64,000 bases of DNA from Penicillus capitatus (GCA_965649825.1 OZ287699.1:772377-836376); one strand, 5' to 3'; positions 19,562-61,527 are shown, numbered from the stretch's first letter. Translations and numbers: made by a program. Notes: generated by a model not told the origin, from the sequence alone.

Positions 19562-20714
19562 CTGGAGCATGCTCAAATGATGAGTATTTATCGATGAATC
19601 TGACAATCCAACTCGAAAACAGATCATCGAAGCAGTGATAAGCGTCCACAGAAGAAATCGTAGATAGAAAACCAACTCTACGACTGGCATCGCCGCAATA
19701 GAGGCGCGATTTGATGTCAAGCGATGGCAGCTTATGGATGCCATCGACGCCGATCGATTCCATCGATCCACGTCCCGATCGTCTGCCCAACCATTGGAGA
19801 ACTAATGTGGAGTTCAACTGACGTCATTTAGGGCGATCGATCGCGTTTTAAGTAGAGTTTTATCTCTGTCGATTTTGCTTGATGGAAAGATCAGTCTCCA
19901 GCTTTTCGAATCTACAAAAGAAACGGAGCTACCTTTAGCGAAGATCGATTTTTTGGCTTAAATCAAGATGCGCAGCGCCGCTGTGACTTGGGATGAAAAT
20001 TTGATGCGACCCGACGAATCGATTAAGTTAACGACATAAGCATAGACATTGCGTTTTTAGAAAAGAAGACATCTGTTTCGTTCCGATCGCAACTGCGTCT
20101 CACCTGTAGAATCAATCCTTTAGTGCCTCATTCGAAATTACAAGCTAGAGTAACATTCTACTCGATTTGATTGTAATGTAAGAAACTGCTCATCTTGGCG
20201 CGTGTCCATCAGAAGACAGTTTTCGCTTGAATGCGCATGCACACTCAACAGAGAGAACGGGCTGTGATGATGGTACGTTCATTCATCGCAGCCATCAAAG
20301 CACGGATATTAATAACTAACCGCAGAGATTTATATGGTTTCGAGACGATCACAAGAAGAATCAACTCTCGAGCATGTTTGAAAAGTTCCACCACTCCAAC
20401 TTCCAGACAGCCATCGACCAGAAGTTAGAACAGGCATCGTTCCGGAAAGCATAGAAACCGATTGCTAAAATCGGACAAATGCACCGATGTGTCGACTAGG
20501 GATCTCTGATAGAGTAGTTCATCACCTGCGGCAGAGACATGGATTCTGAGAAGACCGTCGGGTATTGTGTCTTCAGCCTTTCCAGTACTCTACAGCCGTA
20601 GCAACGCAGAACGAAGGATTACTAGCTGTTATTTGTCTGCAACTATACTGATTCGCATACGAAGCATATACGGTTGGAAGGCAGGACGTTGGGACGCCAG
20701 AGCACCAACCATCC

Positions 20715-21949
20715 ATGCAAAGGCATCCGATTATCACGATGCGTTCCTGCACGGAACTCTCGGCGGAGTTCGTGCTGTCCGGCACAGATACTTCCGTCGC
20801 CAATGCTCTGAGGCGCATCATGATTGGCGAGATACCGACGATCGCGATCGAACTCGTCGAAATCGAGACCAACACGACCGTGCTGACGGACGACTTCCTG
20901 GCACATCGACTGGGACTCATCCCCCTGTCCTCTCTGCGTCGACATCCTCCGTCCCTGCGACGTGGGTTCTGATGGGACGTCTCTGTTCAGAGGCCGCCAA
21001 GATGGTGGGCGCCTACGACAACGCCGAGGAAGACATCGACGAGATCGAGCTGTTTCTGGACGTGCACTGCACGGAGGAAGAGCGAACGGTGCGGTCATGA
21101 GCATCGCTGCATCGCTGCACGGGGATGCTGTTCGCAGATGCTGGTCACATCGAAGGACTTGTCCGTGGGGACGCCCAACGTCGACGTGGTCCCCATCGGC
21201 CATCCGGGGTTCTGCTTCGACGACATAGCGAACATCCCGGTCACCGTCGTCAAACTGAGACAGGGACAGTCGCTCAAACTGAGGGCCATCGCCGTGAAGG
21301 TTCGCTCTCTTGTGAACTCCATGCATCGCCCGTGATCAGGTTTCTGCGCGAGACCAGGGAATCGGGAGAGACCACAGCAAGTGGAGCCCCGTCTCCGCCG
21401 CTTCCTTCACGAACATGCCCGAGATTGCCTTCAACGAATACGTCCTGGCCGGATGGTCCCCACAGCGCAAGATCGAGCTGTTCGAGGAGCTGGCCGAGTG
21501 CTTTCCGGTCGGGCGAAACCCCTTCTGCCTCGACCTGCCGGCCAAAAAGGTCGGTTCTCTCTGCCACACCCACCCGCCGACAAGTGCAGACCGACTGCCG
21601 CAGATGATTCTCAAGCCGGAGCTGTACAACTTTGACGACGCGCACGTTGCCGTGCTGGAGAAGCACGGGGTCCCGGACCTCTTCAAGATACAGTCGGTGC
21701 CGGGCACCTTCATCTTCAAAGTGCGTGTCCGCGATCAGATGCCGACGCGTTGCGATCTTCCTGTGCCGCACGCAGCTGGAGACGACCGGCGTGCTCGACG
21801 CCGCCGAAGTGCTGATGCAGTCCATCGACATCCTGGCGTCGAAGCTGAAGGACATTCGGCGAGCGATCAAGGCGGAGGCGCAGGGGAGCGACGGTGTTCC
21901 GATGCAGATGGACGAGGGACTTCAGGGCGGATACGACGACGGATACTGA
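20715..21949 (+). CDS. RPB3: RNA polymerase II subunit RPB3 (copy 1)
   Basis: AEFVLSGTDTSVANALRRIMIGEIPTIAIELVEIETNTTVLTDDFLAHRLGLIPL; VKLRQGQSLKLRAIAVKG; DHSKWSPV; FIFK/LETTGVLDAAEV. Confidence 0.9.
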
Positions 21950-22065
21950 CGCGTGTAGACGACGTCGCGTTCGATTCCCGCTGCCGCAGACAGACAGAGA
22001 GTCGGCTCTCAAAACATTACTCAGTGTGCGAACAGAGAGGTGTCCGTCGGAACGCAGGCGTGCGT

Positions 22066-23039
22066 CTAAGATCCCATGAAAACGCAGTCCGGGAACTGCA
22101 GTCTCGCGTCGTCCAGTGAGCGGCCCTGCTCTTCGTCTTGCCAGAAGTTGATCACCTGCGTGGCCCGGTTCAGCAGCAGGATCTGGGCATAGCGACAGAA
22201 GCGTCAGTGCGCAGTCGTTCGGCTCGGCGCGTCACTCGCCTGATCCGTTTCGTCGATCCACGCGTTCTCGCTCAGCCTCTGCCGGAGCTCCTCCCAGGCA
22301 TCGGTCCTCGGCCAGATGAAGTACTCCGTCAGCGGAATGCGCTTTCTCTACACGCACAAGGTCGCTTGGTCACAAGGAATGGACGGCGTTCGGATCGCTT
22401 GCGTTTCCGAAGATCTGGTCCACGGCGAACGCGATGTACTTGTCCAGCCACAGGAAGCTCAGCGCGAAGCCCTTCGGGCATCCGGATGGCGGGTCCTGAT
22501 CGGTGTCGGCCGAGATCTCTGCCTCCTCCTCGTCGTCGGCATCCGTCTCCTCCTCCTCCTCCTCGTCCAGCAGCGCCTCCATCGCTTCGCTGGGATCCGC
22601 GGCTTCGTCCTCGTCTCCGCCGAGGTCGGCTCCGAACCCCATCACCTCGTCGTCGTCGAGGTCGTCATCGTCGTCTCCGTAAAGATCCTCGTCGATGTAC
22701 TGGACAGGCGAGAGCGATCGCAGCGAGTACGGGGCGAGATCGCCGTACGGAGAATCGAAGGACCGAGCGCCTTGGCTGTCGAGGGATCGTTCTCCGACGG
22801 CGATGGGAGATGAGGCATCCCGGAGCAAGGGACGCCGATCGCGGCCACTCCGGTACCCTTCTCGATGCAGCGACCTGTCGGATCACACCACGTCGGGGCG
22901 GAAGAACGACTTCGGTGGCTGCGCCGACAGCCTCGACAAGCGGGCGACCGGGCGACCGAACGCAGTCGCTGACCTTCGACGGCCGGACGCCGCGAAGCAC
23001 GGGCACCGTGCGAACGGACGCGTTGACGAGCGGACCCAT
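22066..23039 (-). CDS. PSRP3: Plastid-specific 30S ribosomal protein 3 (Ycf65) precursor with acidic extension (copy 1)
   Basis: [20 protein letters not shown] / [22 protein letters not shown]...W / [15 protein letters not shown] is the PSRP-3/Ycf65 signature; Arg/Ser-rich transit-like N-terminus; start tentative. Confidence 0.88.
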
Positions 23040-23159
23040 GACCGAATCGATTTACACTCCGGAACAGGGCGATGCGTAACAAACTACTCTCAGTGAAAGA
23101 CCGAGCGACGGCAGTGATGTGACCGACGTCCGCGGTGCCGCATCGCCCGACCTCGCGAT

Positions 23160-23571
23160 CTAGGACGTGAAGAACCCTCCGCTCTCGTTTCGAGCGTAGC
23201 CCTGGAGCCACATGCGCCGACGTCCCGTCTGCAGAGTGGGGCGAACGGCTGCACCGGGTTGCGCTCGACCGGAGGATTCCGATCTCTCGGGTACCGAGAT
23301 GCGTCCACCCTCACCACTCGCAGGGTGCTCTGGTAGGAGACGTCGTCGCCGCTGGCCAGTCTCTGCAGCGCCTGTCGATGCGCCTCCTCGTCCGCGGACG
23401 CCTCGTGCGCGATCCACTGCAGCGGAACGCACGTCGACGTCCCGATGCGATGATCCACACGTGCCTCGCCCCTTCCCGCATGGCGCTGGGTCGCACGGTA
23501 GTTCTTCACCTGTCGGGACGGATCGCGCCCGTGCGACGCGCTTCGATTCGAACCTGCTGCCGGACGTCCAT
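23160..23571 (-). CDS. Unknown ~77 aa four-exon protein (copy 1)
   Basis: Three phase-0 introns (GT-AG, GC-AG, GT-AG) give MDVRQQ-VKNYRATQRHAGRGE-WIAHEASADEEAHRQALQRLASGDDVSYQSTLRV-TGRRRMWLQGYARNESGGFFTS*. Confidence 0.5.
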
Positions 23572-23874
23572 GCCGATCGATGCGTCGCCGCCGAACGATC
23601 CGCGTCCTGGAAATGGATCGACGATGACGCGACAGTCTCATTTCGTCGGTCTCGGCGTCCTTGATCGTCCATTACGAAGGGCGACAACTGTTTCGTCCTT
23701 CTCCATCGAGCGCGAACTCTCGTCTCGCCGATCGTTTATTTTCAGAGCGCGGCAGTCTGCGTTCGAACCCAATCGACCGCTGTCCGCATTCGTTGTCTTT
23801 GTTCGGCGTCTCCCTGCTCGTCTTCCTTCCCGTCTGGCGTTGTCGGTGCGTTTGTTCGTTCGCGTCCGAGTTCG

Positions 23875-26800
23875 ATGTCGGGCAGAGGAGGCGGAGGACG
23901 CGGTGGCTATGGAGGTAGGCTCGCACGCCTTCGCGCTCGGCGGCACACGCGTCTCGGCACCAACTGACGAACGCCGAAGGCGAACCGCGTCCTTCTGACG
24001 GTGGACGGATCTGTTGTAGGTCGTGGCAGGGACCGTGGCAGGGACCGCGGAAGAGGTCGCTTCGGCGGAAGAGGAGGAGGTGCGCCGTTCGCGCCGTCGC
24101 TCGTGCTGCTTCCTCACCGTTGTCTCGCGTTGAAGGTCGCGGCGACTTCCGCGCCGTGCCGGAGGCCGAAGGGCGTCGCCAGGTCGAGCAGATCGCGTCG
24201 TCTTTTCGCATCGAACAGCCGTGCATCTCGGTAGGCAACCCCGCTGCCGCATCGCCGCGATCCGAAGGCGTGTGCCTCGCAGGAGAGCATCGACAGTCCG
24301 GAGGCGCCGTCCTATCCGCCGGGCACCATCGGCACGCAGGCCCAGCTCGCGGCGAACTACTTCCAGCTGAACTGTCGGCTGAACAGCGCCTTCCAGTACA
24401 ACGTGACGATCGGTGAGGCACCTCGACGCCGGACGAGCTGCAGCGCGTGTGCGTGCGACAGAGTGCGAGTTCAATCAGGGACTGGAGCACCTGCTGCTCG
24501 CGGAGCTGGCCAGGAGGGAGGAATGGCCTCCGGGGTGGATCTTCGACGGCAAGAACGCCCTCTACACGGCCGGGCAGATCATATCGACCGACGAGCGCGA
24601 GGAGACCGTCGAGCTGGAGCAGGGTCCTAGGTCTCGCCAGTACAAGATCAAGCTGACCCAGACGACCGTGGTGCGCATGAGCCACCTGACGGAGTACGTC
24701 CAGCGCAGCCGAGCCGAGTTTCCGGCAGAACCCGTCCGCGTGCTGGAGATCCTGCTGTCCCACGCCGCGTCCCTGATGCCGGACAGGGTCCTCCACAGGA
24801 AGAGCGTCTTCGTCGACGCGCAGGCCAACAAGCGCGACATCGGACACGGAGCCGAGGTTCGATCCGCTCCGCCGCGATCGGATCCGTGGGCGATTGCTGC
24901 TGCTGCAGGCGTGGCTGGGGTACCACCAGAGCATCCGTCCCTGCCAGAACGGACTGTTCCTGAACATCGACAGCGCGTGCGCCCCGTTCTACAAGCCGAT
25001 GCTCGTCTCCGAGTTCATCGCCGAGATCCTCGGCCAGCAGCACGTCCCGCGAGAGCTCACCAACCAGCAGAAGTCGATCGTCAGAGGCGTCATGAAGAAC
25101 CTGACGGTGACGCCCTCTCTCGCCCGCGCGCCGCGCGGAGACGGGCGGCCGCTCTAGGTGAGTCTGGTGCGCGGGAGGATGCGGAAGAAGGTCGTCGGGC
25201 TGCTGGATCCGCCGACGCGCCTCAGCTTCGAGCACAGGGAGCACGGAGAGATCACCGTCGCCGAGTACTACGGGAGGATGGACTGTCCCCTCCACTACCC
25301 CGAGCTTCCCTGCCTGGACTGCTCGAGGGGCAGAAAGGTCTGCTTCCTGCCTCCGGAGTACGCACGGTAACGCCGAGCACCCGCCGCCGGTCGCTTGCTG
25401 ACGTCGACGGCCGCTTCCCCGCAGGATCGCCCACGCCCAGTTCGTGAACAAGATCACGGAGCGCCACCAGGAGCAGATGATCCGCTTCGCCGCCCAGAGG
25501 CCCGACGAGAAGGAGCGCTACCTGAACGGCCTGATCAGGGAGGACGCCGACATCAACCGGATGCAGAAGGTCCCGGACTTCCAGCTCTCGGCGCTGGAGC
25601 CCGCCATGAAGCAGATCCGCGGCCGCGTCCTCCCGTCCCCCTTCCTGTCCTACAAGGAGCCGGCCTGCTTCGACGTCGGCACCGAGGGGCAGTGGAACCT
25701 CGGGGGGATGACGATGAACTTCTTCAAGGCGAAGAAGCTCAAGTCCTGGGCGCTGCTCTCGCTGGCGCAGGAGCGCTACATCAACAGGCCCGGCGAGAAC
25801 GGCATCCAGTCGTTCCTGCACGAGCTCTACGAGGCCCTGAGGGCGCACACGGTCATCCCGTCCTCGGTCGACCTGTCGAGGCCGCCGATCGTCTACACCA
25901 GCGACTCCAACTTCATCCAGGACATGGAGCAGGCCAAGGCGCGGGCGCGTGATGCCTACGGCAGGGATCCGGACATCATCCTCTGTCTCATCCCCAGGAG
26001 AAGTGCGTGCTCTCATCCGCGCTGCCCCGATGGGACGCCTTCTGTGCCTCCGCAGATACGCGCCTGTACAAGATCGTCAAGCGGACGTCGGACGTCCACG
26101 TCGGCATTCCGACGCAGTGCTTCGCGGGGGACAAGTCCGGAGTCGGCGACAATCGGCCTCCCAGGGGACGCATGCAGTACTGCGCCAACCTGGCGCTCAA
26201 GATCAACGTGAAGGTATCCCCCTTCCCCTCTGCTCTCTCCGCAGAACGCACAGATCGATGCTCCGTAGGTGGGCGGCACCAACTCGGTCCTGCTGGGGAC
26301 GACGCAGTGCGGACTGCCCATGGTGCACCAGCGCCGACCCTACATCGTGCTGGGGGCGGACGTGTCGCACGCCTCGCCCGGATCGCATCTCTCGTCGATC
26401 GCCGCCGTGGTGGGCAGCGTCGATCCCATGGCGTCCCGCTACTCCAGCCGCATCACGTCGCAGCCGCCGCGCGAGGAGATCATCATCGACATGAAGGAGT
26501 CCGTCAAGGGACTCCTGCGCGACTTCTACGAGCACAACCACCAGAAGAAGCCGGAGTCCATCGTCGTGTTCCGGGACGGCGTGTCGGAGGGCTTCTTCAG
26601 CCGGGTGCTGACGCACGAGTACAGGGCCATCCGCGAGGCCTGCGGCGAGATGGGCGATCCGGCGGCGGACTACGCGCCGCCCATCACCTACATCATCATC
26701 CAGAAGAGGCACCACACGCGTCTGTTTCCGAAGGGGCAGAACGTCGCCCACCGGAGCGGGAACGTGAAGCCCGGGACGGTGGTGGACTCGGAGATCACCA

Positions 26801-27129
26801 GTCCCTACGGCCACGACTTCTTTCTCTGCTCCCAGGCGGGAATCCAGGGAACCGTGCGCCCGGCGCACTACCACGTGCTGGTGGACGAGAACAGATTCGG
26901 TTCGGACGCCATCCAGGTCATGTGCTACTGGATGTGCTACATGCAGTGCAGATGCACGAAGCCGATCTCGGTGCCGGCTCCGGCGAACTACGCCCATCTG
27001 GCGGCGCTGCGTGCGAGGCTGATCGCGGGCGAGGAGACGGACGACGAGACGAGCAGCATCGCATCGGGATCCGGGCCGTCGGCCGGACCCGCTTTCGGAG
27101 CTTCCCAGGCCAAGATGTACTACGTCTGA
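23875..27129 (+). CDS. AGO: Eukaryotic Argonaute, slicer-competent (copy 1)
   Basis: RGG-rich N-terminus; ANYF; FDGKNALYT; WLGYHQSIRP...LNID; PAZ-like ITVAEYY...YPELPCL...FLPPE; PIWI: PTQCF, NLALKINVK/MGGTN, GADVSH, PREE, FRDGVSEG, QKRHHTRLF, GTVRPAHYHVL, PAPANYAHLAA. Confidence 0.97.
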
Positions 27130-28368
27130 TGCCCGTGCGTCGGCGGCATCTATCGATCGGCCTTTTTGACAGGACTTATTGATCCTGTTCTCCTCGGTAC
27201 CTTTTTTTCGTGTTCTCGGCGCAGCTCTAGTCGCGGAAATCATCGACGACGTGCACTTATCTCTTGGCCGATGTGCTGTTGAGAGTCTTTGACTTCGATA
27301 GTGAGGGGGATGGATACCAGTCGGATGGATGGCGATGTCATTTGTCAACGTACTGTTTTTTGGCGATTTTCGATCGTGGGCAAGCAGAAGGGTGTTCTTA
27401 AAAGGGAGAGGGAAATGAATGGAGTGTTTAAGAAATGAGATATCTATCGGGAGTCGTCTAAGTGTGTTTGTATCGTGGGAACATTTGGCCTGTAGCAATA
27501 CACGAAATAAGGAAGGCGATACTCGAAGAAAGGATTTATACCGTCCTGAAAGTTGGGGCGGTAAGAGACAGGACGCGTCGAATTTCTGATTCGCACTGAC
27601 ACCGACATCTACTTGCTGCTTCTTCCTCCTAGAGGAACGGAGTCCAGCATTTCTATCTTCTGCGACGGCACAATGTCGGCGTTTTTCTGATGGTGCAGGA
27701 AGTGTGGGGGTTCGAATCGACTTCGAATCGTTGACGTCTGCTACGTTGTGCAGAGATTGTCGACAAGCAGAATATGACATCGAACGATGAACGAAACAAC
27801 AGCGGCTTCAAGTGGACGATGCGACCCTCTGTCTGGTTGTCCCTATGCGGCGAGCGTCTCTTTCGACGGTCATTCGCCGAAGGAAAGGCGGAATGAACCC
27901 CGTAGAAAGGTTGTTGACGATAGAGTCATTTCTTGAAGTCGATGTGCGCAGCATATCAATTTCTGTCGACTGATTGCCAAACAAGAGGACAGATGTGCGT
28001 TCAATTCCGAAAAGGTCGATTCGGACGGATGATAACATGTTGTCAAAAGTGACTAATACAATGGTATGACATGGATCAGATACTCTGTGTCCTGAAAGCA
28101 AGTCACGTTCGAGTTATTTTACGAGTTTCCAAAGGGTCTGCAATTTTGAATGACCTTCATTGTCAAATTGTTTGGCATAATATTCTCCCCTTGTCATCTG
28201 ATCAACAGACTCTGCTGCCTGATCTGTATCGTTTCAGTCGAACAGATCTCCAACAGAGTATTGTAAACAGCTAGAAGCCGCACGGTCACGCAGAACTGTT
28301 GTGGAGAGGATAAACGAATTGATCGAGCGCCTCAGTGCAAATCCTCTCTTTATGAGTTTAAGAATCGA

Positions 28369-28769: not shown

Positions 28770-28991
28770 GTGATGTCAATCGTCGACAGGAAATGGAGTG
28801 AAAGGGATCTGAAGGGGCATGAGAAGGCCGCAATCGCCTTCATGTTCTTCAATTTCCTCCTTTCCTTCAGTGGGACGTTTTTGGCAGTAAGGGCCCTGCA
28901 GGACGTGCGATCGAAGCAGAAGGAGGAGTACAATCGGTTGTCCGTCATCTTAGACAATCTGCAGTTCGAACCAGACAGTGATAGACTCTAG
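28770..28991 (+). CDS. Possible 73 aa single-pass membrane protein
   Basis: Intronless ORF with one hydrophobic helix (AAIAFMFFNFLLSFSGTFLAV) then a charged helical tail; no family recognised. Confidence 0.3.
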   Translation: MMSIVDRKWSERDLKGHEKAAIAFMFFNFLLSFSGTFLAVRALQDVRSKQKEEYNRLSVILDNLQFEPDSDRL

Positions 28992-29139
28992 TGCTCTTCG
29001 TAAAAATTCGCCGTTTATTATCCTTCTTCTGAAGCTCCTCCACCTGAGATTCCTCAATCTCCTCACACTTGGATATGACAATCGACGACGTGGGCTTTCC
29101 ACTCTCCTCGTTTCCTGTGGACAGAGTCATCCATATCTC

Positions 29140-30330
29140 TCATGGTGCGACATCAATCACCTTGTGCTTCGATCCTCGCCAACAGATCCATCCCATGTAG
29201 CACTTTGCCAAAAACAGATCTCTGCGTACAGAAAAATGAGACACAAAGGGGTCACCGGAAGAAACCTTCTGATCAAACTCCGGCAAAGGATTGAACGAGA
29301 GCATGAAGACTGCGATTCCCCGATTGGGATCGATACTCAGCAGACCTGGACCAACATGCTTCAATCCCATGCGTTCTGCCTGCGTAACAGAATCCAGACG
29401 TAAACCAGAAAGGGCACCATCGACAGATCGTACCTTTAAAGTCTCTTCATAAAAGCTATCGTCTTCGTTCGCGGCTCTGTCTATCAGTCCGAACTCTGCA
29501 TACCGAGCAGGGTACACATTTCCAAACCGGGCGTTTTCAAGATCGTCCTCCTCTGCATAGAGACCATGCATCGTCAACCCGCTATGCTTGACTCCGGCTC
29601 TTACGGCTCTCTAAATCTTGGCGTCCATTCACAAAAGACAGAGAATTCTGCACAGCTTCCGGAGCCTCCTTGCCAAACAGGCTATAGATCAGGATTCCAG
29701 CATCTTTGCTGTCACTTTTTATGTCGACCTATGCCTGCAATCGCACGATATTGCGTCAGGGCTTCATCGGATATCGATCAGACCCACTGAGTGATCGTCG
29801 TATCTAAGATATCCTCCTCCAACAGATGATCAAAGCTTTCGTATCCCATAAATCTCTTCACCTATGCAAGTGTGAGACGCTTGGAATCGTCTATCTCCTT
29901 CGAAGCATCCATCCATCCATGAACCAGTAGGACCTAAAGTATGGAGGGAGAGTAAAAGCCGGCCGGATGGCTGCAATACGACCATCGATATCGACTTCTT
30001 CGTCCGAAGTCCCGGAGAGGTGAGATGTGTTATCGATCGAAAGGTCAAGCTGCCTGAGATACACCTCCAACTTAAGAGACTTCTTCGAGAAGCTCTTGGC
30101 AACGTGACGTTCCACTGTCACCTCATCCGTATCCAGTATGCATTGTATTCGATCCTGAAGCTTAGACCGCGCTAGTATTGCTCCGAACTGTCTAAACCTT
30201 CTTCTTGCGAATCGTTCCTGACGATACAGTTTTTAGTAGGGCGTAAGCCTGTATCCGTAACCCTCTCAGAACCGATCGTCCTTGACGTTTCAGATAAAGA
30301 CTGCGTAGGGAGTGCGAGAGCGCAAATGGC
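29140..30330 (-). CDS. Hypothetical gene or decayed gene, unknown family
   Basis: Protein-like ORFs 29140-29577 and 29891-30121 plus intermediate fragments; no clean gene model. Confidence 0.25.
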
Positions 30331-32764
30331 ATTTCGAACTTCGCAGGGACAGAGTCAAAGGGAATCGCGCACTAACTGATCGATTAATCGCGTAAGCGAC
30401 ACGAAATCGACACGACAAGCACGACCGTCGTTGTACCGAAAATCGAACTATCGATTTCTAATCGGTGTACTTTGCGTTTACCGAATACCAGAGGGCCGGT
30501 CTTTGATCAATCGATTGCGAAAAACATCAAGATCGATTGCAATCTGGAGACCGGCCGGCGATCGCACTTCTATCGAAACTTGATTATGATCAGGTATGAC
30601 TAGTAGCTCATTCAGAAGGCATAGCGATTTCGATCGCGTAGTCAGAAATCGATCGAAGCGCGCTCTTCGTGGTTGAAAATGCGATGTACTGATCGTGGGT
30701 TTTGAAGTGTCAGGAAGACGGCTTTCTTCGTAACAGCGACAGTCATTGTAGAGATGCTATACGAACATTAATATATCCGTATGTTTCTTTCGTTTGCATG
30801 TCCCAAGTCTTCTTTGCCACAGAACGTTGTCTAAGACGTAATATATGCGAATGTGTCTTGTTTAACCTTGTTCCAATCTTTTAGCTTTTGTTGTGCAAGC
30901 TTAGCGCAGTTAGGACGTATACCAGCGACAACAAGTTCGTACTGCGTCTGCCTGTTCTTCTAATACTCGCTCATGGTTTCGATCAGGTATGCGCTTTCGC
31001 AGACCACTTTGATCGAATCCGATTGCAGATCGTGACTACACGATTTCGAATCAGAGACATCTGAGGTTTCGTACCAGTTTGTTGTACAATTGATCAGGGT
31101 CTAATGAGTCAATCGAAAATGGGAAACTCGAGACGATTGGCGTGTCGTGATCGGTTAGCCATAGAACAACTCTTGATCTGTTTGTTCACTTGTTGTTGAT
31201 CGATTTGGACCCACTCAATATCGATTCATCGCATTCTTGATTGAATCGAGCGTCCTCCAATGTTTTCGTCTAATCGTCTAAACAGTTTCGATTACACCGA
31301 ATTAGATGTCAAGAAAATCATTGCGACTAGCTGAACAATCTCATGACTAACAAGAAAACTATCGATTAACTCCGACACGGAAACTAATTCATCATAATTT
31401 TTCGTGTCCTTAAAAGACATCCATGGTGCTTATGATTTTGCAGACGCATTTCGACTTCATTAATATCTACTTCAATCTTGTCATCTTTATCTTTGGAATC
31501 ATCTAGAGTTTTGCGCATCGCAACTAGTATGTCTCATATCGTCTTCATTGTCTTCTAAAACATGCCTTCAATTCTATTCAACCGATCGTCGACGATTTAT
31601 GTCTGTCTTTTGACTTATTCTAAATCTTGGGTTGTTTCTTTAAAGACAATGTTCATACTATCGAGAATAACAGCTCGGCTCCCTCCCTCACCCTTTTTCG
31701 TTTAACTTGTTCTCTAACCTATTGATTTGTTCTTTGATCACCGACATCGAGTTAAAAGTCGCATCATCCACTGTTAATGTAAGCCTGGATGAAGCAGTGA
31801 AATCAACGGGAGCACTTGGACCATTATCGACGATAGAAAAGCAGGTAAATGTGAAAACAGTAAAGTATGAAAACTATACATGGTTCGTCAAAGAACTTTA
31901 CACATTTGGTGAAAGTATGGGTCACGTCCAATTCGTAAAGTTTCACATCCGGTCATATATCGATGAAACAATTCGTGCATCGTGTAGGAATTCTATGTTT
32001 CTTCTTAAAGCTTTAACGACGTCCCCTGACTGATGCGGTAGTTCATTCTTCTTCATGAATTTATATCTTACGAGAATGCCTGCAATACGATAAGACGATG
32101 AGCGTCAATAAATACCCGCAGTATAGATCGTGTCGGGCACGATTCAATTGCGATCTCCCGTCGATATTCGAGCGATCATCCACGTCGCCAACGACTTTCA
32201 AGGTCTTCTACCCATGCGAACAAGCCAACCTCTAGTTTCCCCTTCTTGCTTCAGCGATGCGACACCGCTGTCAGGTGTAAGGTAGGCTTAGATGCCTTTT
32301 GAAAAACGCCGCTATTAGGTATAACAGAGGACACAGCAATGACCTTTCTGTCCAACTTTGCCGGGTGTTTCGACCGATTACCATTAGCACCCGTACATAT
32401 GTTCAAACGTTCAGCCGATCACGGCTGCCGGAGAGCCTATCAACATCGTTGAGTCGAGTGGTAGTTGATAGCGCCTCTATGTCTCCAAGTGCCATGGTAC
32501 CTCGATGCCTCGTTCGCAAGGCGGAAATCGAAGCGGTGGATGGGAAGTTCGATTGGAGGCTCCCGATGTGATGGATCGTTTCGAAGCAGCACTTCCAGAT
32601 GTGACATGGTGATTCTGAGTACTTGAAGCGAGAACTGTTGTTCGTATTCGCCATTAGTTAAGTGTTACTATCGCCGCGAATTTTCTCCCGTCACTTGCTT
32701 CCCGAGCAGGGGTCCGGCCCAGAGGTCGGTCTACAGAGATACCGTGGTTTGCACTTAGTGACAC

Positions 32765-34816: not shown

Positions 34817-34949
34817 CCGATCTCATCGACTGTCGCCGTCGATCGATCCTGCCGATCTCATCGACTGTCGCCGTCGATCGATCCTGCCGATCTCATCGAC
34901 TGTCGCCGTCGATCGATCCTGCCGATCTCATCGACTGTCGCCGTCGATC
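34817..34949. repeat. 35-bp minisatellite, ~3.8 exact copies (CCGATCTCATCGACTGTCGCCGTCGATCGATCCTG)
   Basis: Units start at 34817, 34852, 34887 and 34922 (partial); no spacers. Confidence 0.97.
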
Positions 34950-35048
34950 ATCGCTGACAGTACGATTTTCAGTTCTGTTGATCATTTGCTTGTAAATTAC
35001 GCAGACAAGATTCGGATCGAGGAGTCATTGTAACATCGAGATCTTGTT
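34817..35048 (-). repeat. Right member of diverged inverted repeat pair (partner 19311-19561)
   Basis: Reverse complement aacaagatctcgatgttacaatgactcc...gatcaacagaactgaaaatcgta...gacagtcgatga aligns with 19311-19445. Confidence 0.8.
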
Positions 35049-39719: not shown

Positions 39720-39847
39720 CTCTCGTGGCAGTGCCCTCAACTCCATACCCGTGTCTTCGAATGCTGCTGGACACTATTCAACATAGAAATTGAAATAGAG
39801 CGACGGTTCTGAGGCGTAAGATGTTAGTAGAGAGACGTCCATGCAAA

Positions 39848-52200: not shown

Positions 52201-54061
52201 CTAGTGGAGATTGCTTCCTCTGATGGCCATGTCATTCGAAGAGATGCGCAGCTTCTTTCGGAGCATCACGCAGAGACTCTCCAGGACGAGGGACAGAGCC
52301 GTCTCGAAGGAGGCACCCATCTGCATGATGCTCATCCTTCCCTCCGGCAGCGAGGACACCATCTCCGCGTCCAGACCTCCAAGCTTTCTGTTCATGACCG
52401 GCATAGAGGGCGGCAACGTCTGCGATGCGATGCGTATCACGCCATCCACGAATGGCAAGGGAGCCGTCTTGTGCGCCGTGAACGCAACCACGCGTGCTCT
52501 CGACCTCAGTGCCTCCAGGGACAGCGCATTCACCTAGAGCAACACGCACGCACCATCCACGCTCAGTCCCACAAGATCAGGAAAAGGGGGCGTGGGATAC
52601 CGTGCTGTAGTAACTCGGTCCAGCCGCGACTACGAAGAGATCGCCGGTCGTCAGCGCAGGGGTGTTGGTATCTCCCACGAAGTAGGCCTTGAAACCCAGG
52701 TTGTGCAGATTGATGGCGAAGGCTTTCAGAACGAGTCCTTCTCGGCCGACGCCATAGCAGCAAATGCGATTGGCATCTCGAATCGCACGCGCCAGTCCTG
52801 TCACATCTCGAGGGTCGACAGACTGAAGAATTGTGGACAATTCATCGAGCACAGCTGACTGCACGTAGCCAAAGTCTTCATTCCTCCTGTCCTCCTGTCT
52901 TTCTCTCTTGTTCCCAATCATCATCGGTGCATCAATGTTGTCGGAGTCGAAAGTGCTTGATTCCTCGGAACGAGGTTCGCTTTGCTGCAGACATGCATTC
53001 GCCGTCAGCGTCATACGGCGCCGCCGGGATCGCACCTTGATTGGATCACGCTTGTATCGTGCGAGTCTGTTCTTCAGCCACACAGACACCTGCAGCTCCG
53101 TCACCGGACCTGCCTCCTGCACAGCCCGAAACAGCTCTGGCGTTGCCTTGGTGTATCCTGCAGCAGCACGGCATCCGTTCGGTCGACTGCGTGTCAGATG
53201 GCGAGGATCGGCGTGCCTGTTCGAAAGTGTTGCTCCAGATGATGAAGCTGCGTGTTGTTCGGCTTCCATCTGTTCTTGGGCGCCGTGCCGCACGAGTCTT
53301 CGCTCCGACGCTGAGGTGAGGCGCGCTGTGATGTCATCTCTTCCTTGACGACAGGCTCATTCCACGACGCGCTGCGAATCGCAAGAGATGGCTCGAACAG
53401 TCCCGCGCCACATCGATGGGTGGGATGCTCCATCTGCTGCGGTTGGCTCGATAGTGTCGGCGGCAGCGTCTTCGACACGTGGAAGGCGTCGGACGGCAAT
53501 GACCTGTCGAAGTCTGTGATCAGCAGTCGGTTCGATGCGGCCACGTGCAGCTGCTGCAGACTCCCCACGGACGCCTGGGCTTCCTGGTGCAGACTCGCCG
53601 CCGTTGTCAAGTAATCCCTGAGAACATCCATCGATGGGAGATTGGGAGAATCGAATGACGGACTTTGTGAATGTCCTCGCCGAGGCGGGATCGAGTGAGT
53701 CGGTCAGGTCGTCGTAGATGCGGTCTCCTGACATGGGAGGGGGCGAGCTTCCACTGCTGGCGTTCTGAAAGGGACATTGCGTCGTCAAGGGCTGACTGTA
53801 CAGTCCTGGACACTCGTCAAAGAATCCACACCCCTCGGCCATCGGCGTCGTCTGGAACTCGTGCGCCTGAAGATTTCCGAATGCGGGGGAAAGCGGATAG
53901 CTCTGGCTGTAGCACAAAGGACCGCCTCCACTCGTGAGCTGCGTCGTCGAAGCGGAATCGGTCGAAAGATCGTTCGGAACGAATGGCGCAAGAAAGCTCT
54001 CCTGCGTGCACAGCGCCAGGTCTTCTGGGGAGATATGCACGTCGATTAATCCCGTGTCCAT
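52201..54061 (-). CDS. WOX-like homeodomain fused to SIS (3-hexulose-6-phosphate isomerase-like) domain
   Basis: Acidic S/P/T-rich N-terminus; KNRWKPNNTQLHHLEQHFRTG/YTKATPELFRAVQEAGPVTELQVSVWLKNRLARYKR; then CYGVGREGLVLKAFAINLHNLG...VGDTNTP...GDLFVV and QMGASFETAL...SNLH*. Helices 2-3 and the SIS N-half share ORF 52577-53293. Confidence 0.85.
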
Positions 54062-54930
54062 GCTTCAACGACCGGTTCTTCCTGAAACAACGACGACGCC
54101 GTCAGGGAGGGGTCTTCCGCCCGTTGTGTTACGAGGTGCCGCGGAATGGCGATGGTTGAAGCGTGGGATGGTAAAGACGAGCTGTCGATGGACCGTCAAA
54201 GGACTAGCTTGGAAGTGATGGCCTCGGTAGCGATGAGACCAATAGAGACGCAGAGAGCGAGGAAGGTCCAACCGTCGACGCAGATGTTTAGACGCAGGTA
54301 ATGGCACGAAGACCCTTTTTGGAGACGGGATAAGGTGCTGTCAATATCTCGGCGGCAGCCGCACGGCGTTTTGGCTCTCCGTCAGGTACGAATGGCGGTT
54401 AGACGAAGGCGCCAACGAGGTCGAGGCGACAACCGCGATGGACTGCAGGTGTCCTGAACACGCAGTCGGGTGTCGATGCCATGCAGTGTGCATGTAAGCT
54501 GCTGACGCGGATGCGGGCACGGTTAGGAAATGGCGAACGACGGTGCGCCGTTGTGGATCGCGAGGGACAGGACTGAGGCATTTCTGGCCTCATGTCTGTG
54601 AGACGACTCTCGATAGATATCTCATTTCTTAAACACTCCATTCATTTCCCTCTCCCTTTTAAGAACACCCTTCTGCTTGCCCACGATCGAAAATCGCCAA
54701 AAAACAGTACGTTGACAAATGACATCGCCATCCTTCCGACTGGTATCCATCCCCCTCACTATCGAAGTCAAAGACTCTCAACAGCACATCGGCCAAGATA
54801 TAAGTGCACGTCGTCGATGATTTCCGCGACTAGAGCTGCGCCGAGAACACGAAAAAAAGGTACCGAGGAGAACAGGATCAATAAGTCCTGTCAAAAAGGC
54901 CGATCGATAGATGCCGCCGACGCACGGGCA

Positions 54931-57900
54931 TCAGACGTAGTACATCTTGGCCTGTGAAGCTCCGAAAGCGGGTCCGGCCGACGGCCCGGATCCCGATGCG
55001 ATGCTGCTCGTCTCGTCGTCCGTCTCCTCGCCCGCGATCAGCCTCGCACGCAGCGCCGCCAGATGGGCGTAGTTCGCCGGAGCCGGCACCGAGATCGGCT
55101 TCGTGCATCTGCACTGCATGTAGCACATCCAGTAGCACATGACCTGGATGGCGTCCGAACCGAATCTGTTCTCGTCCACCAGCACGTGGTAGTGCGCGGG
55201 GCGCACGGTTCCCTGGATTCCCGCCTGGGAGCAGAGAAAGAAGTCGTGGCCGTAGGGACTGGTGATCTCCGAGTCCACCACCGTCCCGGGCTTCACGTTC
55301 CCGCTCCGGTGGGCGACGTTCTGTCCCTTCGGAAACAGACGCGTGTGGTGCCTCTTCTGGATGATGATGTAGGTGATGGGCGGCGCGTAGTCCGCCGCCG
55401 GATCGCCCATCTCGCCGCAGGCCTCGCGGATGGCCCTGTACTCGTGCGTCAGCACCCGGCTGAAGAAGCCCTCCGACACGCCGTCCCGGAACACGACGAT
55501 GGACTCCGGCTTCTTCTGGTGGTTGTGCTCGTAGAAGTCGCGCAGGAGTCCCTTGACGGACTCCTTCATGTCGATGATGATCTCCTCGCGCGGCGGCTGT
55601 GACGTGATGCGGCTGGAGTAGCGGGACGCCATGGGATCGACGCTGCCCACCACGGCGGCGATCGACGAGAGATGCGAGCCGGGCGAGGCGTGCGACACGT
55701 CCGCCCCCAGGACGATGTAGGGTCGGCGCTGGTGCACCATGGGCAGTCCGCACTGCGTCGTCCCCAGCAGGACCGAGTTGGTGCCGCCCACCTACGGAGC
55801 ATCGATCCCTGCGTTCCGCGGAGAGGAGAGGGGAAGGGAAATACCTTCACGTTGATCTTGAGCGCCAGGTTGGCGCAGTACTGCATGCGTCCCCTCGGAG
55901 GCCGATTGTCGCCGACTCCGGACTTGTCCCCCGCGAAGCACTGCGTCGGAATGCCGACGTGGACGTCCGACGTCCGCTTGACGATCTTGTACAGGCGCGT
56001 ATCTGCGGAGGCACAGAAGGCGTCCGATCGGGGCCGCGCAGATGAGAGCGCGCACTTCTCCGGGGGATGAGACAGAGGATGATGTCCGGATCCCTGCCGT
56101 AGGCATCACGCGCCCGCGCCTTGGCCTGCTCCATGTCCTGGATGAAGTTGGAGTCGCTTGTGTAGACGATCGGCGGCCTCGACAGGTCGACCGAGGACGG
56201 GATGACCGTGTGCGCCCTCAGGGCCTCGTAGAGCTCGTGCAGGAACGACTGGATGCCGTTCTCGCCGGGCCTGTTGATGTAACGCTCCTGCGCCAGCGAC
56301 AGCAGCGCCCAGGACTTGAGCTTCTTCGCCTTGAAGAAGTTCATCGTCATCCCCCCGAGGTTCCACTGCCCCTCGGTGCCGACGTTGAAGCAGGCCGGCT
56401 CCTTGTAGGACAGGAAGGGCGACGGGAGGACGCGTCCGCGGATCTGCTTCATGGCGGGCTCCAGCGCCGAGAGCTGGAAGTCCGGGACCTTCTGCATCCG
56501 GTTGATGTCGGCGTCCTCCCTGATCAGGCCGTTCAGGTAGCGCTCCTTCTCGTCGGGCCTCTGGGCGGCGAAGCGGATCATCTGCTCCTGGTGGCGCTCC
56601 GTGATCTTGTTCACGAACTGGGCGTGGGCGATCCTGCGGGGAAGAGGCCGTCGACGTCAGCAAGCGACCGGCGGCGGGTGCTCGGCGTTACCGTGCGTAC
56701 TCCGGAGGCAGGAAGCAGACCTTTCTGCCCCTCGAGCAGTCCAGGCAGGGGAGCTCGGGGTAGTGGAGGGGACAGTCCATCCTCCCGTAGTACTCGGCGA
56801 CGGTGATCTCTCCGTGCTCCCTGTGCTCGAAGCTGAGGCGCGTCGGCGGATCCAGCAGCCCGACGACCTTCTTCCGCATCCTCCCGCGCACCAGACTCAC
56901 CTAGAGCGGCCGCCCGTCTCCGCGCGGCGCGCGGGCGAGAGAGGGCGTCACCGTCAGGTTCTTCATGACGCCTCTGACGATCGACTTCTGCTGGTTGGTG
57001 AGCTCGCGCGGGACGTGCTGCTGGCCGAGGATCTCGGCGATGAACTCGGAGACGAGCATCGGCTTGTAGAACGGGGCGCACGCGCTGTCGATGTTCAGGA
57101 ACAGTCCGTTCTGGCAGGGACGGATGCTCTGGTGGTACCCCAGCCACGCCTGCAGCAGCAGCAATCGCTCACGGATCCGATCGCGGCGCAGCGGATCGAA
57201 CCTCGGCTCCGTGTCCGATGTCGCGCTTGTTGGCCTGCGCGTCGACGAAGACGCTCTTCCTGTGGAGGACCCTGTCCGGCATCAGGGACGCGGCGTGGGA
57301 CAGCAGGATCTCCAGCACGCGGACGGGCTCTGCCGGAAACTCGGCTCGGCTGCGCTGGACGTACTCCGTCAGGTGGCTCATGCGCACCACGGTCGTCTGG
57401 GTCAGCTTGATCTTGTACTGGCGAGACCTAGGACCCTGCTCCAGCTCGACGGTCTCCTCGCGCTCGTCGGTCGATATGATCTGCCCGGCCGTGTAGAGGG
57501 CGTTCTTGCCGTCGAAGATCCACCCCGGAGGCCACTCCTCCCTCCTGGCCAGCTCCGCGAGCAGCAGGTGCTCCAGTCCCTGATTGAACTCGCACTCTGT
57601 CGCACGCACACGCGCTGCAGCTCGTCCGGCGTCGAGGTGCCTCACCGATCGTCACGTTGTACTGGAAGGCGCTGTTCAGCCGACAGTCCAGCTGGAAGTA
57701 GTTCGCCGCGAGCTGGGCCTGCGTGCCGATGGTGCCCGGCGGATAGGACGGCGCGTCCGGACTGTCGATGCTCTCCTGCGAGGCACACGCCTTCGGATCG
57801 CGGCGATGCGGCAGCGGGGTTCCCTACCGAGATGCACGGCTGTCCGATGCGAAAAGACGACGCGATCTGTTCGACCTGGCGGCGCCCTTCGGCCTCCGGC

Positions 57901-58183
57901 ACGGCGCGGAAGTCGCCGCGACCTTCAACGCGAGACACCGGTGAGGGAGCAGCACGAGCGACGGCGCGAACGGCGCACCTCCTCCTCTTCCGCCGAAGCG
58001 GCCTCTTCCGCGGTCCCTGCCACGGTCCCTGCCGCGACCTACAACAGATCCGTCCACCGTCAGAACGACGCGGTTCGCCTTCGGCGTTCGGCAGTTGGTG
58101 CCGAGACGCGTGTGCCGCCGAGCGCGAAGGCGTGCGAGCCTACCTCCATAGCCACCGCGTCCTCCGCCTCCTCTGCCCGACAT
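54931..58183 (-). CDS. AGO: Eukaryotic Argonaute, slicer-competent (copy 2)
   Basis: PIWI ORF 54931-55791 translates identically to 26269-27129; few amino-acid differences elsewhere (e.g. ACFNVG vs ACFDVG). Confidence 0.97.
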
Positions 58184-58486
58184 CGAACTCGGACGCGAAC
58201 GAACAAACGCACCGACAACGCCGGACGGGAAGGAAGACGAGCAGGGAGACGCCGAACGGGGACAACGAATGCGGACAGCTGTCGATTGGGTTCGAACGCA
58301 GACTGCCGCGCTCGGAAAATAAACGATCGGCGAGACGAGAGTTCGCGCTCGATGGAGAAGGACGAAACAGTTGTCGCCCTTCGTAATGGACGATCAAGGA
58401 CGCCGAGACCGACGAAATGAGACTGTCGCGTCATCGTCGATCCATTTCCAGGACGCGGATCGTTCGACGGCGACGCATCGATCGGC

Positions 58487-58898
58487 ATGGACGTCCGGCA
58501 GCAGGTTCGAATCGAAGCGCATCGCACAGGCGCGATCCGTCCCGACAGGTGAAGAACTACCGTGCGACCCAGCGCCATGCGGGAAGGGGCGAGGCACGTG
58601 TGGATCATCGCATCGGGACGTCGACGTGCGTTCCGCTGCAGTGGGTCGCGCACGAGGCGTCCGTGGACGAGGAGGCGCATCGACAGGCGCTGCAGAGACT
58701 GGCCAACGGCGACGACGTCTCCTACCAGAGCACCCTGCGAGTGGTGAGGGTGGACGCATCTCGGTACCCGAGAGACCGGAATCCTCCGGTCGAGCGCAAC
58801 CCGGTGCAGCCGTTCACCCCTCTCTGCAGACGGGACGTCGGCGCATGTGGCTCCAGGGCTACGCTCGAAACGAGAGCGGAGGGTTCTTCACGTCCTAG
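58487..58898 (+). CDS. Unknown ~77 aa four-exon protein (copy 2)
   Basis: Same splice model as copy 1; differs at WVAH/WIAH, SVDE/SADE and LANG/LASG; ends GYARNESGGFFTS*. Confidence 0.5.
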
Positions 58899-59018
58899 AT
58901 CGCGAGGCCGGGCGATGCGGCACCGCGGACGTCGGTCACGTCACTGCCGTCGCTCGGTCTTTCACTGAGAGTGGTTTGTGACGCGTCGCCCTCTTCCGGA
59001 GTGTAAATCGATTTGGTC

Positions 59019-59989
59019 ATGGGTCCGCTCGTCAACGCGCCAATTCGCACGGTGCCCGTGCTTCGCGGCGTCCGGCCGTCGAAGGTCAGCGACTGCGTTC
59101 GGTCGCCCGGTCGCCCGCTTGTCGAGGCTGTCGGCGCAGCCACCGAAGTCGTTCTTCCGCCCCGACGTGGTGTGATCCGACAGGTCGCTGCATCGAGAAG
59201 GGTACCGGAGTGGCCGCGATCGGCGTCCCTTGCTCCGGGATGCCTCATCTCCCATCGGCGTCGGAGAACGATCCCTCGACAGCCAAGGCGCTCGGTCCTT
59301 CGATTCTCCGTACGGCGATCTCGCCCCGCACCTGCTGCGATCGCTCTCGCCTGTTCAGTACATCGACGAGGACCTGTACGGAGACGACGATGACGACCTC
59401 GACGACGACGAGGTGATGGGGTTCGGAACCGATCTCGGCGGAGACGAGGACGAAGCCGCGGATCCCAGCGAAGCGATGGAGGCGCTGCTGGACGAGGAGG
59501 AGGAGGAGACGGATGCCGACGACGAGGAGGAGGCAGAGATCTCGGCCGACACCGAACAGGACCCGCCATCCGGATGCCCGAAGGGCTTCGCGCTGAGCTT
59601 CCTGTGGCTGGACAAGTACATCGCGTTCGCCGTGGACCAGATCTTCGGAAACGCAAGCGATCCGAACGCCGTCCATTCCTTGTGACCAAGAGACCTTGTG
59701 CGTGTAGAGAAAGCGTATTCCGCTGACGGAGTACTTCATCTGGCCGAGAACCGATGCCTGGGAGGAGCTCCGGCAGAGACTGAGCGAGAACGCGTGGATC
59801 GACGAAACGGATCAGGCGAGTGACGCGTCGAGCCGAACGACTGCGCACTGACGCGTCTGTCGCTATGCCCAGATCCTGCTGCTGAACCGGGCCACGCAGG
59901 TGATCAACTTCTGGCAAGACGAAGAGCAGGGCCGCTCACTGGACGACGCGAGACTGCAGTTCCCGGACTGCGTTTTCATGGGATCTTAG
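59019..59989 (+). CDS. PSRP3: PSRP-3/Ycf65 precursor (copy 2)
   Basis: [48 protein letters not shown]; poly-Glu tract one codon shorter than in copy 1. Confidence 0.88.
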
Positions 59990-60105
59990 ACGCACGCCTG
60001 CGTTCCGACGGACACCTCTCTGTTCGCACACTGAGTAATGTTTTGAGAGCAGACTCTCTGTCTGTCTGCGGCCGCGGGAATCGAACGCGACGTCGTCTAC
60101 ACGCG

Positions 60106-61336
60106 TCAGTATCCGTCGTCGTATCCGCCCTGAAGTCCCTCGTCCATCTGCATCGGAACACCGTCGCTCCCCTGCGCCTCCGCCTTGATCGCTCGCCGAA
60201 TGTCCTTCAGCTTCGACGCCAGGATGTCGATGGACTGCATCAGCACTTCGGCGGCGTCGAGCACGCCGGTCGTCTCCAGCTGCGACACAGGAAGATCGCA
60301 ACGCGTCGGCATCTGATCGCGGACACCCACTTTGAAGATGAAGGTGCCCGGCACCGACTGTATCTTGAAGAGGTCCGGGACCCCGTGCTTCTCCAGCACG
60401 GCAACGTGCGCGTCGTCAAAGTTGTACAGCTCCGGCTTGAGAATCATCTGCGGCAGTCGGTCTGCACTTGTCGGCGGGTGGGTGTGGCAGAGAGAACCGA
60501 CCTTTTTGGCCGGCAGGTCGAGGCAGAAGGGGTTTCGCCCGACCGGAAAGCACTCGGCCAGCTCCTCGAACAGCTCGATCTTGCGCTGTGGGGACCATCC
60601 GGCCAGGACGTATTCGTTGAAGGCAATCTCAGGCATGTTCGTGAAGGAAGCGGCGGAGACGGGGCTCCACTTGCTGTGGTCTCTCCCGATTCCCTGGTCT
60701 CGCGCAGAAACCTGATCACGGGCGATGCAGGGAGTTCACAAGAGAGCGAACCTTCACGGCGATGGCCCTCAGTTTGAGCGACTGTCCCTGTCTCAGTTTG
60801 ACGACGGTGACCGGGATGTTCGCTATGTCGTCGAAGCAGAACCCCGGATGGCCGATGGGGACCACGTCGACGTTGGGCGTCCCCACGGACAAGTCCTTCG
60901 ATGTGACCAGCATCTGCGAACAGCATCCCCGTGCAGCGATGCAGGGATGCTCATGACCGCACCGTTCGCTCTTCCTCCGTGCAGTGCACGTCCAGAAACA
61001 GCTCGATCTCGTCGATGTCTTCCTCGGCGTTATCGTAGGCGCCCACCATCTTGGCGGCCTCTGAACAGAGACGTCCCATCAGAACCCACGTCGCAGGGAC
61101 GGAGGATGCCGACGCAGAGAGGACAGGGGGATGAGTCCCAGTCGATGTGCCAGGAAGTCGTCCGTCAGCACGGTCGTGTTGGTCTCGATTTCGACGAGTT
61201 CGATCGCGATCGTCGGTATCTCGCCAATCATGATGCGCCTCAGAGCATTGGCGACGGAAGCATCTGTGCCGGACAGCACGAACTCCGCCGAGAGTTCCGT
61301 GCAGGAACGCATCGTGATAATCGGATGCCTTTGCAT
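60106..61336 (-). CDS. RPB3: RNA polymerase II subunit RPB3 (copy 2)
   Basis: Same motifs as copy 1; head-to-head with the aldolase gene. Confidence 0.9.
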
Positions 61337-61527
61337 GGATGGTTGGTGCTCTGGCGTCCCAACGTTCTGCCTTCCAACCGTATATGCTTCGTATACGGTC
61401 CGCTCCACGTGGCACCCACTGTCCTGATCCCTTTTAAACAGACGGTCATCAAGGGGTGCAACCTTTGGTTCTCGCGTTTCTTCGTCTCTTTACGTTCTAC
61501 TGCATTGGCATACCTCTGTCGCGCAAG

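Follow-up and report, generated by a model that had tools for sequence, protein, structure and literature searches.

The 64,000-nucleotide stretch of Penicillus capitatus DNA analysed here (GCA_965649825.1 OZ287699.1:772377-836376; the window below) carries a real segmental duplication in a chlorophyte green-algal nuclear genome. A 6.8-kb cassette with genes for RPB3, the predicted plastid ribosomal protein PSRP-3, a predicted homologue of the ciliary protein FAP276 and an Argonaute protein (AGO) is present twice in opposite orientation, and a third, truncated copy lies beyond the window. The explanation that fits the data best overall, and that we consider probable though by no means certain, is a palindrome whose copies have been homogenised by gene conversion, with GC-biased conversion acting on them.

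The window is part of the main contig (ctg340523_41x, 1.58 Mb, 41x) of the metagenome assembly ERZ25074695 in ENA. By exact look-up, an ORF encoded in the window was located on this contig and on ctg335408_18x. It was compared with two variant contigs of the same assembly, ctg335408_18x (46.8 kb) and ctg330753_10x, which have depths of 18x and 10x, and with two relatives. One of these, L003, is an 824-kb contig of ERZ26696514 from a different sample with about 85% identity, in which the locus covers about 10 kb on each side of FAP276. The other, L001, is more distant, the AGO region having about 68% nucleotide identity. The literature was also searched for the three sample accessions, and nothing was returned. 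The arms of the duplication and the DNA between them are as follows:

20654..27459, plus strand: arm 1, 6,806 bp, 63.2% GC; neither junction is seen in the relatives
54601..61397, minus strand: arm 2, 6,797 bp, 63.2% GC; reverse complement of arm 1, with a context kept in the relatives L001 and L003
27460..54600, no strand: unique spacer, 27,141 bp, about 49% GC except at 52.3-54.6 kb; many intron-rich genes

The repeat search returned four collinear inverted blocks that tile both arms, and BLAST aligned arm 1 to arm 2 in a single high-scoring segment pair of 6,806 columns with 98.43% identity and 98 mismatches. By global alignment, indels of 4, 3 and 2 bp are the only three between the arms; past either arm end the sequence could not be aligned, so the ends are sharp. 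The original prediction of a 6.8-kb inverted duplication at a spacing of about 27 kb is thereby borne out. Its coordinates, 20657-27459 and 54601-61394, were right overall but placed one end 3 bp short (20654 and 61397 as measured), and its estimate of 97-98% identity was slightly low. It had also described the ends as free of the marks of transposition, and no target-site duplication, terminal repeat or microhomology was found at the four arm/flank junctions, nor did Pfam reveal a transposase-like domain in the plus-strand frames of the arm or in the open reading frames (ORFs) flanking arm 1. Within the cassette, RPB3 in forward orientation is followed by PSRP-3 and FAP276 in reverse and by AGO in forward orientation. 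A 31-bp minisatellite of about 4.5 perfect copies is located at 19422-19576, 1.1 kb to the left of arm 1.

Beyond position 61397, after a further 8,708 bp, a third cassette starts in the orientation of arm 1:

70106-72862 in window-equivalent coordinates (L008:17526-20282), plus strand: third copy on ctg340523_41x, running to the end of the fetched locus

This copy is truncated at its 5' end. It starts inside RPB3 intron 5 and keeps only the last RPB3 exon, then carries intact PSRP-3 and FAP276 genes and at least the 5' (N-terminal) part of AGO. Its identity is 97.3% to arm 2 and 96.7% to arm 1. Together with arms 1 and 2 it makes up a cluster that comprises three copies or more, whose orientation alternates. 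The doubling of AGO dosage that had been put forward would probably be an undercount, because the third copy holds at least the AGO 5' part.

The recurrence of the junctions outside the main contig makes it unlikely that the repeat is a product of assembly. The 18x contig is 99.6% identical to window positions 8311-19468 and reaches the left junction of arm 1 at the same base, while the 10x contig contains arm 2 together with both of its flanks. Two haplotypes or strains of one locus might conceivably have been mis-joined as an inverted repeat, as this is a metagenome assembly with variant contigs of lower depth (18x and 10x) and both of them appear to end a few hundred base pairs inside a repeat copy (the 10x contig at arm 3, as observed, and the 18x contig at arm 2, as projected). 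We give such a mis-join a very small probability. The arms are 1.6% apart, against a flank divergence of 0.2-0.5% between the contigs; unique gene-bearing sequence lies on all four arm sides; and the differences between the arms bear the mark of purifying selection. As the arm/flank junctions are found on two further contigs and arm 2 also in L003, a relative from another sample, an assembly artefact is very unlikely.

The relatives were used to see which arm holds the older position, synteny being one of the checks that the original prediction had proposed. L003 is collinear with window-equivalent positions 51336-69256, straight across arm 2, but its match to arm 1 is confined to the repeat and ends exactly at 27459 and 20654. 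In L001 the order is RPB3, PSRP-3, FAP276, AGO and the homeobox gene, as at arm 2. The junctions of the relatives are present at arm 2 on both sides (AGO/homeobox in L001 and L003, RPB3/aldolase in L003), and neither of them at arm 1. On this synteny, arm 2 is in the context conserved in the relatives, and arm 1 is best described as a derived copy, both of whose junctions would be new. The synteny with L003 ends at window position 51336, and the segment L003:1-2588, which contains a CRAL_TRIO-like ORF, has no match in window-equivalent 1-72862. Over positions 3859-4807 the window differs at six positions from a locus of its own public record (L006), and the stretches L004 and L008 are identical to the window. 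The idea that the window is a low-GC outlier of a Micromonas-like (Mamiellales) genome, with the arms at normal GC, was rejected, as there were no Mamiellales matches; the best named RPB3 match was to Bryopsis (49%), and full-length AGO matches reached 35%, so that no close annotated relative exists. The organism is a chlorophyte by the Bryopsis match, by the coding of PSRP-3 in an intron-bearing nuclear cassette and by its Chlamydomonas-type FAP276.

Two origins had been offered for the repeat, a recent staggered-break inversion and a palindrome kept homogeneous by gene conversion. In the staggered-break model from Drosophila, inversion breakpoints yield inverted duplications, and one ancestral junction is predicted for each arm. 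Such duplications resemble the present one in having inverted copies around a unique segment, sharp ends and no transposon hallmarks. However, both conserved junctions here are at arm 2 and none is at arm 1, a result that would carry less weight if L003 bears the same palindrome. The inversion is further disfavoured by the third copy, and it was the palindrome homogenised by conversion that gained support from the comparison of copies described next.

If the copies have exchanged sequence, those of one contig lineage should resemble one another more than they resemble their positional counterparts. A quartet test was performed on the span 20654-23044, the 2.4 kb of variant arm 1 that is available for all copies. 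In this span, the distance is 1.6-1.7% between the two main-contig arms, 2.3% between variant arm 1 and variant arm 2, and 2.8-3.3% between either main arm and the variant copy in the corresponding position. The informative sites supported the paralogue grouping (main arms together, variant arms together), the positional grouping and the third grouping in a ratio of 16:4:1, which departs from equal thirds with P=7e-5. When the changes were polarised with L003, derived states common to both arms were found in both lineages, six in the main lineage and eight in the variants. The divergence between the main and variant contigs, 0-0.5% in ordinary flanks, also increases to about 1.6-3% within the arms. 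The signature of non-allelic gene conversion between the copies is present in these sequences, since paralogues that resemble one another more than they do the copies in corresponding positions point to non-allelic exchange.

The same data make it improbable that a single fairly recent duplication, by copy-and-paste or staggered-break inversion, occurred without any later exchange and that the 1.6% simply records its age. In favour of such a history, silent divergence between the arms is roughly uniform at about 3% (a silent-site difference, pS, of 0.029, and 2.65% in introns), the differences are not significantly clustered, and the identity of the arms is under that of classical conversion-maintained palindromes. 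It fails to account for main-contig paralogues that are closer than positional counterparts at 16:4:1, or for the derived states common to both arms in both lineages. Its staggered-break version also meets the placement of the conserved junctions and the third copy; taken together, the conversion signature, the junctions and the third copy argue against a single inversion of this kind.

It should be noted that several points weigh against conversion as the explanation. The test was made on 2.4 kb of variant arm 1 only, the two variant contigs (18x and 10x) may be different strains, and some of the informative sites are adjacent and perhaps reflect single events. Classical palindromes typically have >99% identity, and the 98.4% of these arms implies that conversion is not very frequent. 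The spacing of the differences gave no significant evidence for discrete conversion tracts, and the longest identical runs, of about 300 bp, are within chance at a mean spacing of about 67 bp. In addition, three spacer proteins (window 28773-36910) were found on the main contig only, although a collinear 18x contig would span them, so the 18x contig may leave the path of the window beyond arm 1. A structural variant, for example by direct-repeat recombination between arm 1 and arm 3, or differences at the protein level are possible reasons.

The following course can be proposed. Arm 2 lies where the relatives carry the cassette. A second complete copy would have been placed in inverted orientation 27 kb away as arm 1, and a third, with RPB3 cut to its last exon, 8.7 kb past arm 2 in the orientation of arm 1. 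Arm-to-arm conversion would then move variants between the copies and so keep those of one contig lineage alike. Over a long period, GC-biased conversion may have helped to push the cassette to 63% GC, with a GC content at third codon positions (GC3) of 0.8-0.9, in a neighbourhood of about 49%. The extra copies may raise, or back up, the dosage of slicer-type AGO.

The composition of the arms was analysed in this light. They exceed the rest of the window by 14 points of GC (63.2% versus 49.4%), which is their most striking feature and one that the original prediction did not mention. On the left of arm 1 the change in GC coincides with the repeat boundary, and on the right it comes about 200 bp before the arm ends, the 3' untranslated region (UTR) of AGO having about 49% GC. 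GC3 is 0.90 in AGO, 0.85 in PSRP-3, 0.83 in RPB3 and 0.80 in FAP276, and the introns of the arms have 62-69% GC. Meanwhile, GC3 is 0.51-0.57 at the orthologous codons of L001 and 0.48-0.60 in the flank genes of the window. With introns that are GC-rich as well and GC3 low in L001 and in the flank genes, the rise is regional and lineage-specific and not the outcome of codon selection. Among variants present in a single copy, 54 are GC-to-AT and 16 AT-to-GC (derived AT-to-GC 23%), from which a mutational equilibrium near 35% GC follows. Among variants present in at least two copies the numbers are 39 and 31 (44% AT-to-GC), and the two classes differ with P=0.012 in Fisher's test. A higher share of AT-to-GC changes among multi-copy variants is what GC-biased conversion predicts, but an outgroup 11-19% diverged inflates the apparent AT-to-GC changes among widely shared variants.

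The GC-rich DNA is not exactly coincident with the repeat, as it continues beyond arm 2:

52300..54600, minus strand: GC halo outside arm 2, 57-61% GC; homeobox gene (WOX-like by motif reading), also following AGO in L001 and L003

The continuation extends for 2.3 kb in the window and likewise in L003 (L003:3501-6000), which carries the same GC-rich island. Because of this halo, the island could predate the duplication. It might then be a local recombination hotspot or an older ancestral feature that was merely copied, with conversion occurring but not causing the GC content. This is on the whole unlikely, yet it deserves to be weighed seriously. For it speak the run of GC excess into the homeobox gene (57-61% GC, GC3 0.60) in both the window and L003, the divergence between main and variant contigs, which is raised in the halo too (1.2-2.2%, against 0-0.5% in ordinary flanks), and the sharp GC edges of arm 1, which the insertion of GC-rich DNA explains trivially. 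The step at the arm 2 boundary is nevertheless large, with a GC3 of 0.90 in AGO and of 0.60 in the adjoining gene, and L001, which is not GC-rich, shows the rise to be specific to this lineage. Primate X palindromes also show a similar halo in flanks that were once arm sequence (PMC8981503).

The atypical local composition and the sharp boundaries might likewise suggest foreign GC-rich DNA, acquired by horizontal transfer or as a mobile element and inserted more than once. This is hardly credible, as the distant relative L001 has the four genes and the homeobox gene in the same order at about 48% GC. The cassette further consists of core housekeeping genes with the short-intron structure seen in L001, and it is devoid of target-site duplications and terminal repeats and, in the frames and ORFs searched with Pfam, of a transposase domain. 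GC-biased conversion among the copies is, as we infer, most likely the main cause of the GC excess, with a pre-existing hotspot as a serious rival. A bolder form of this explanation can be put forward tentatively, with rather less than even confidence: the cassette would be an old amplicon of at least three copies in which GC-biased conversion, confined to the repeat, raised the GC of silent sites, once about 50%, to about 90% on a chromosome that otherwise remained at about 49%.

The substitutions between the arms were used to examine whether both copies are under constraint, a dN/dS comparison (ratio of non-synonymous to synonymous rates) having been suggested along with the original prediction. 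For AGO, there are 4 non-synonymous and 21 synonymous differences, which gives a dN/dS of 0.06, with P=3e-10 against neutrality and P=1e-6 against neutral drift of one copy. For PSRP-3, the counts are 4 and 7 (dN/dS 0.16; P=0.04 against one copy drifting). The counts for RPB3 (1 non-synonymous, 2 synonymous) and FAP276 (3 and 1) have no power. Overall, coding sequence is 0.95% divergent, compared with 2.65% for introns and 2.3% for intergenic DNA. By these counts, purifying selection acts on PSRP-3 as well as on the two AGO copies. At a dN/dS of 0.06, both AGO copies would be functional genes and neither a decaying copy.

The two AGO genes are:

23875..27129, plus strand: AGO copy 1, 10 exons, 907 aa; RGG-rich N-terminus followed by N, L1, PAZ, MID and PIWI
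54931..58183, minus strand: AGO copy 2, 907 aa; four amino-acid differences, none in PIWI

Pfam recognised, in order, ArgoN (3e-14), ArgoL1 (8e-15), PAZ (2e-9), ArgoMid (2.5e-4, below the gathering score) and Piwi (1.5e-92). Full-length homologues have the same domains, and their identity tops out at 35%. The AGO motifs GADVSH, PREEII, RDGVSEG and YAHLAA align with GADVTH, HRQEII, RDGVSEG and YAHLVA of human AGO2, which we take to contain D597, E637, D669 and H807. Since the same residues are present in both arms, the DEDH tetrad that had been reported for both proteins stands. In the MID domain, YKIVK..PTQC..LKINVK aligns with YAEVK..ATQC..LKINVK of human AGO2, and the residues of the 5'-phosphate pocket, presumably Y529, K533, Q548, K566 and K570 in the human protein, are retained. 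The proteins of the two arms differ by E60G, E72D, N95D and D459N, and the PIWI translations are identical, as predicted. By its catalytic tetrad, AGO is a putatively slicer-competent member of the eukaryotic AGO clade.

Most public gene calls over the arms (window 54878-58386 and 20573-27780) are antisense ORFs or are out of frame, one of them a 431-aa ORF at 57091-58386, and for this reason the AGO of the window and that of L003 are absent from the protein collection. No match above 74% was obtained in the first homology search. For the antisense ORFs of arm 1 and the gamma-glutamyltranspeptidase (GGT) ORF, no record was found by look-up, and a scan of metagenome contigs with the PIWI region returned no relatives.

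The remaining genes of the cassette, the regions next to them and the aldolase gene beside arm 2 are:

20715..21949, plus strand: RPB3 copy 1, 6 exons, 321 aa; Pfam RNA_pol_L and RNA_pol_A_bac
60106..61336, minus strand: RPB3 copy 2, intact; differs from copy 1 by T26A only; placed head-to-head with the aldolase gene
22066..23039, minus strand: PSRP-3 (Ycf65-type plastid ribosomal protein) copy 1, 4 exons, 195 aa, with an acidic N-terminal tract
59019..59989, plus strand: PSRP-3 copy 2, intact, shorter by one Glu codon
23160..23571, minus strand: FAP276 homologue copy 1, 4 exons, 90 aa, N-terminus MDVRQQVKN
58487..58898, plus strand: FAP276 homologue copy 2, intact
23572..23874, no strand: divergent FAP276-AGO intergenic region, 303 bp between start codons
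within 61398..64000, plus strand: class I fructose-bisphosphate aldolase gene, oriented away from arm 2 RPB3; N-terminus resembling a transit peptide

Spliced models were built from frame-specific Pfam hits, conservation with a related contig and GT/GC-AG boundaries. The introns are very short: most have 42-58 bp, and the two longer ones measure 105 and 274 bp. Once they were modelled, all four genes proved intact in both arms, in agreement with the first description of the locus. The 4-bp and 2-bp indels between the arms are intronic (RPB3 intron 5 and AGO intron 9), and that of 3 bp costs PSRP-3 a single Glu codon of its acidic tract. Across the five copies compared, every indel that is not a multiple of 3 sits in an intron or a UTR. 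Such indels led us to drop two earlier models: a PSRP-3 model with a long exon 1, in which they exposed an intron, and a 128-aa model of the FAP276 gene with an MRL start, in which they exposed the 5' UTR. Two PSRP-3 introns were best modelled as GC-AG (window 22402 and 22239, minus strand; donors GCAAGC and GCGAGT), and they may be a by-product of the GC drive.

The identities given earlier for RPB3 and PSRP-3 hold. In the RPB3 protein the RpoA insert domain interrupts the RNA_pol_L dimerisation domain, and the best solved structure for this protein in the PDB is Arabidopsis Pol II/IV/V subunit 3 (NRPB3; E=1e-57, full length). Its best named match is the Bryopsis protein, at 49%. The alternative RPAC1 (AC40) was rejected, since the PDB match to RPAC1 is only 9e-32. 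PSRP-3 matches the full profile 1-48 of Pfam PF04839 with E=8.7e-22, and its plastid role is a prediction from this family. The gene that had been listed as unknown is, by homology, a FAP276 homologue, FAP276 being a ciliary doublet-microtubule inner protein of Chlamydomonas. In BLASTP the 90-aa protein has 46% identity to Chlamydomonas FAP276 over the full length (E=3e-22), with the likeness running from the MDLxQQVKN start to the GYIRNExGGFFTS end, and the family profile matches PDB 6u42_6Q and 6ve7_W with E=3e-33. An exhaustive search of 1.8 billion proteins returned 29 representative relatives.

Upstream of the RPB3 start codon the arms share only 61 bp, against the roughly 58 bp estimated originally, and the head-to-head arrangement of arm 2 RPB3 with an aldolase gene, of class I, was found as described. 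The divergent RPB3/aldolase region occupies 61337-61530. As the repeat boundary cuts it 61 bp from the RPB3 start codon, RPB3 of arm 1 may lack part of its promoter. The 303-bp region between FAP276 and AGO is presumed to be a shared promoter. The spacer contains genes for a proteasome subunit, histidinol dehydrogenase, a mitochondrial carrier and gamma-glutamyltranspeptidase, as well as the homeobox gene, and ORF reading added a putative C-terminal-processing-protease-like gene and a putative SIS-domain-like gene.

A small palindromic amplicon homogenised by conversion belongs to a known class; this one has an unusual host in a green alga, an unusually large GC signature and the core RNA-silencing effector on board. 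The closest likeness is to the palindromes of primate sex chromosomes (P1-P8 of the human Y and 12 conserved on the X; PMC3723533, PMC8981503), which also have gene-bearing inverted arms, a unique spacer and arm-to-arm conversion, with arms GC-richer than their flanks and AT-to-GC changes favoured among spreading variants. In the X palindromes the arms have 46.3% GC against 41.2%, an excess of about 5 points compared with 14 here, and their halos are attributed to former arm sequence (PMC8981503). The primate arms measure tens of kilobases to megabases and exceed 99% identity, whereas those described here are 6.8 kb long and 98.4% identical. Their genes are testis genes, in contrast to housekeeping or silencing genes in at least three copies here, with no sign of sex linkage or of a non-recombining region. 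Long inverted repeats with homologous gene pairs in Caenorhabditis elegans are likewise small autosomal whole-gene inverted duplications, and their arms are described as actively maintained and alike for longer than expected (PMC1803023). Plastid inverted repeats and further multigene families homogenised by conversion, such as ribosomal DNA and histone genes, also combine concerted evolution with a rise in GC (cited in PMC8981503); the present case is instead a nuclear, protein-coding cassette of low copy number.

Conversion-maintained palindromes are best known from the sex chromosomes of animals and plants, and this locus is a small, gene-dense example from a green alga. Intact AGO genes of the slicer type number at least two, and probably three, within one 52-kb neighbourhood. 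A practical lesson is that antisense gene calls over the GC-rich arms hide AGO from searches of protein databases. If the causal link between conversion and composition is true, the locus would offer a tractable case in which to measure GC-biased gene conversion outside animals and yeast. Should the GC drive also prove to be confined to the repeat, the shift in composition would be the strongest described for a palindrome, and this in the nuclear genome of a green alga. The locus would then also be a natural gauge of the strength of biased conversion, one that would protect and multiply a slicer AGO.

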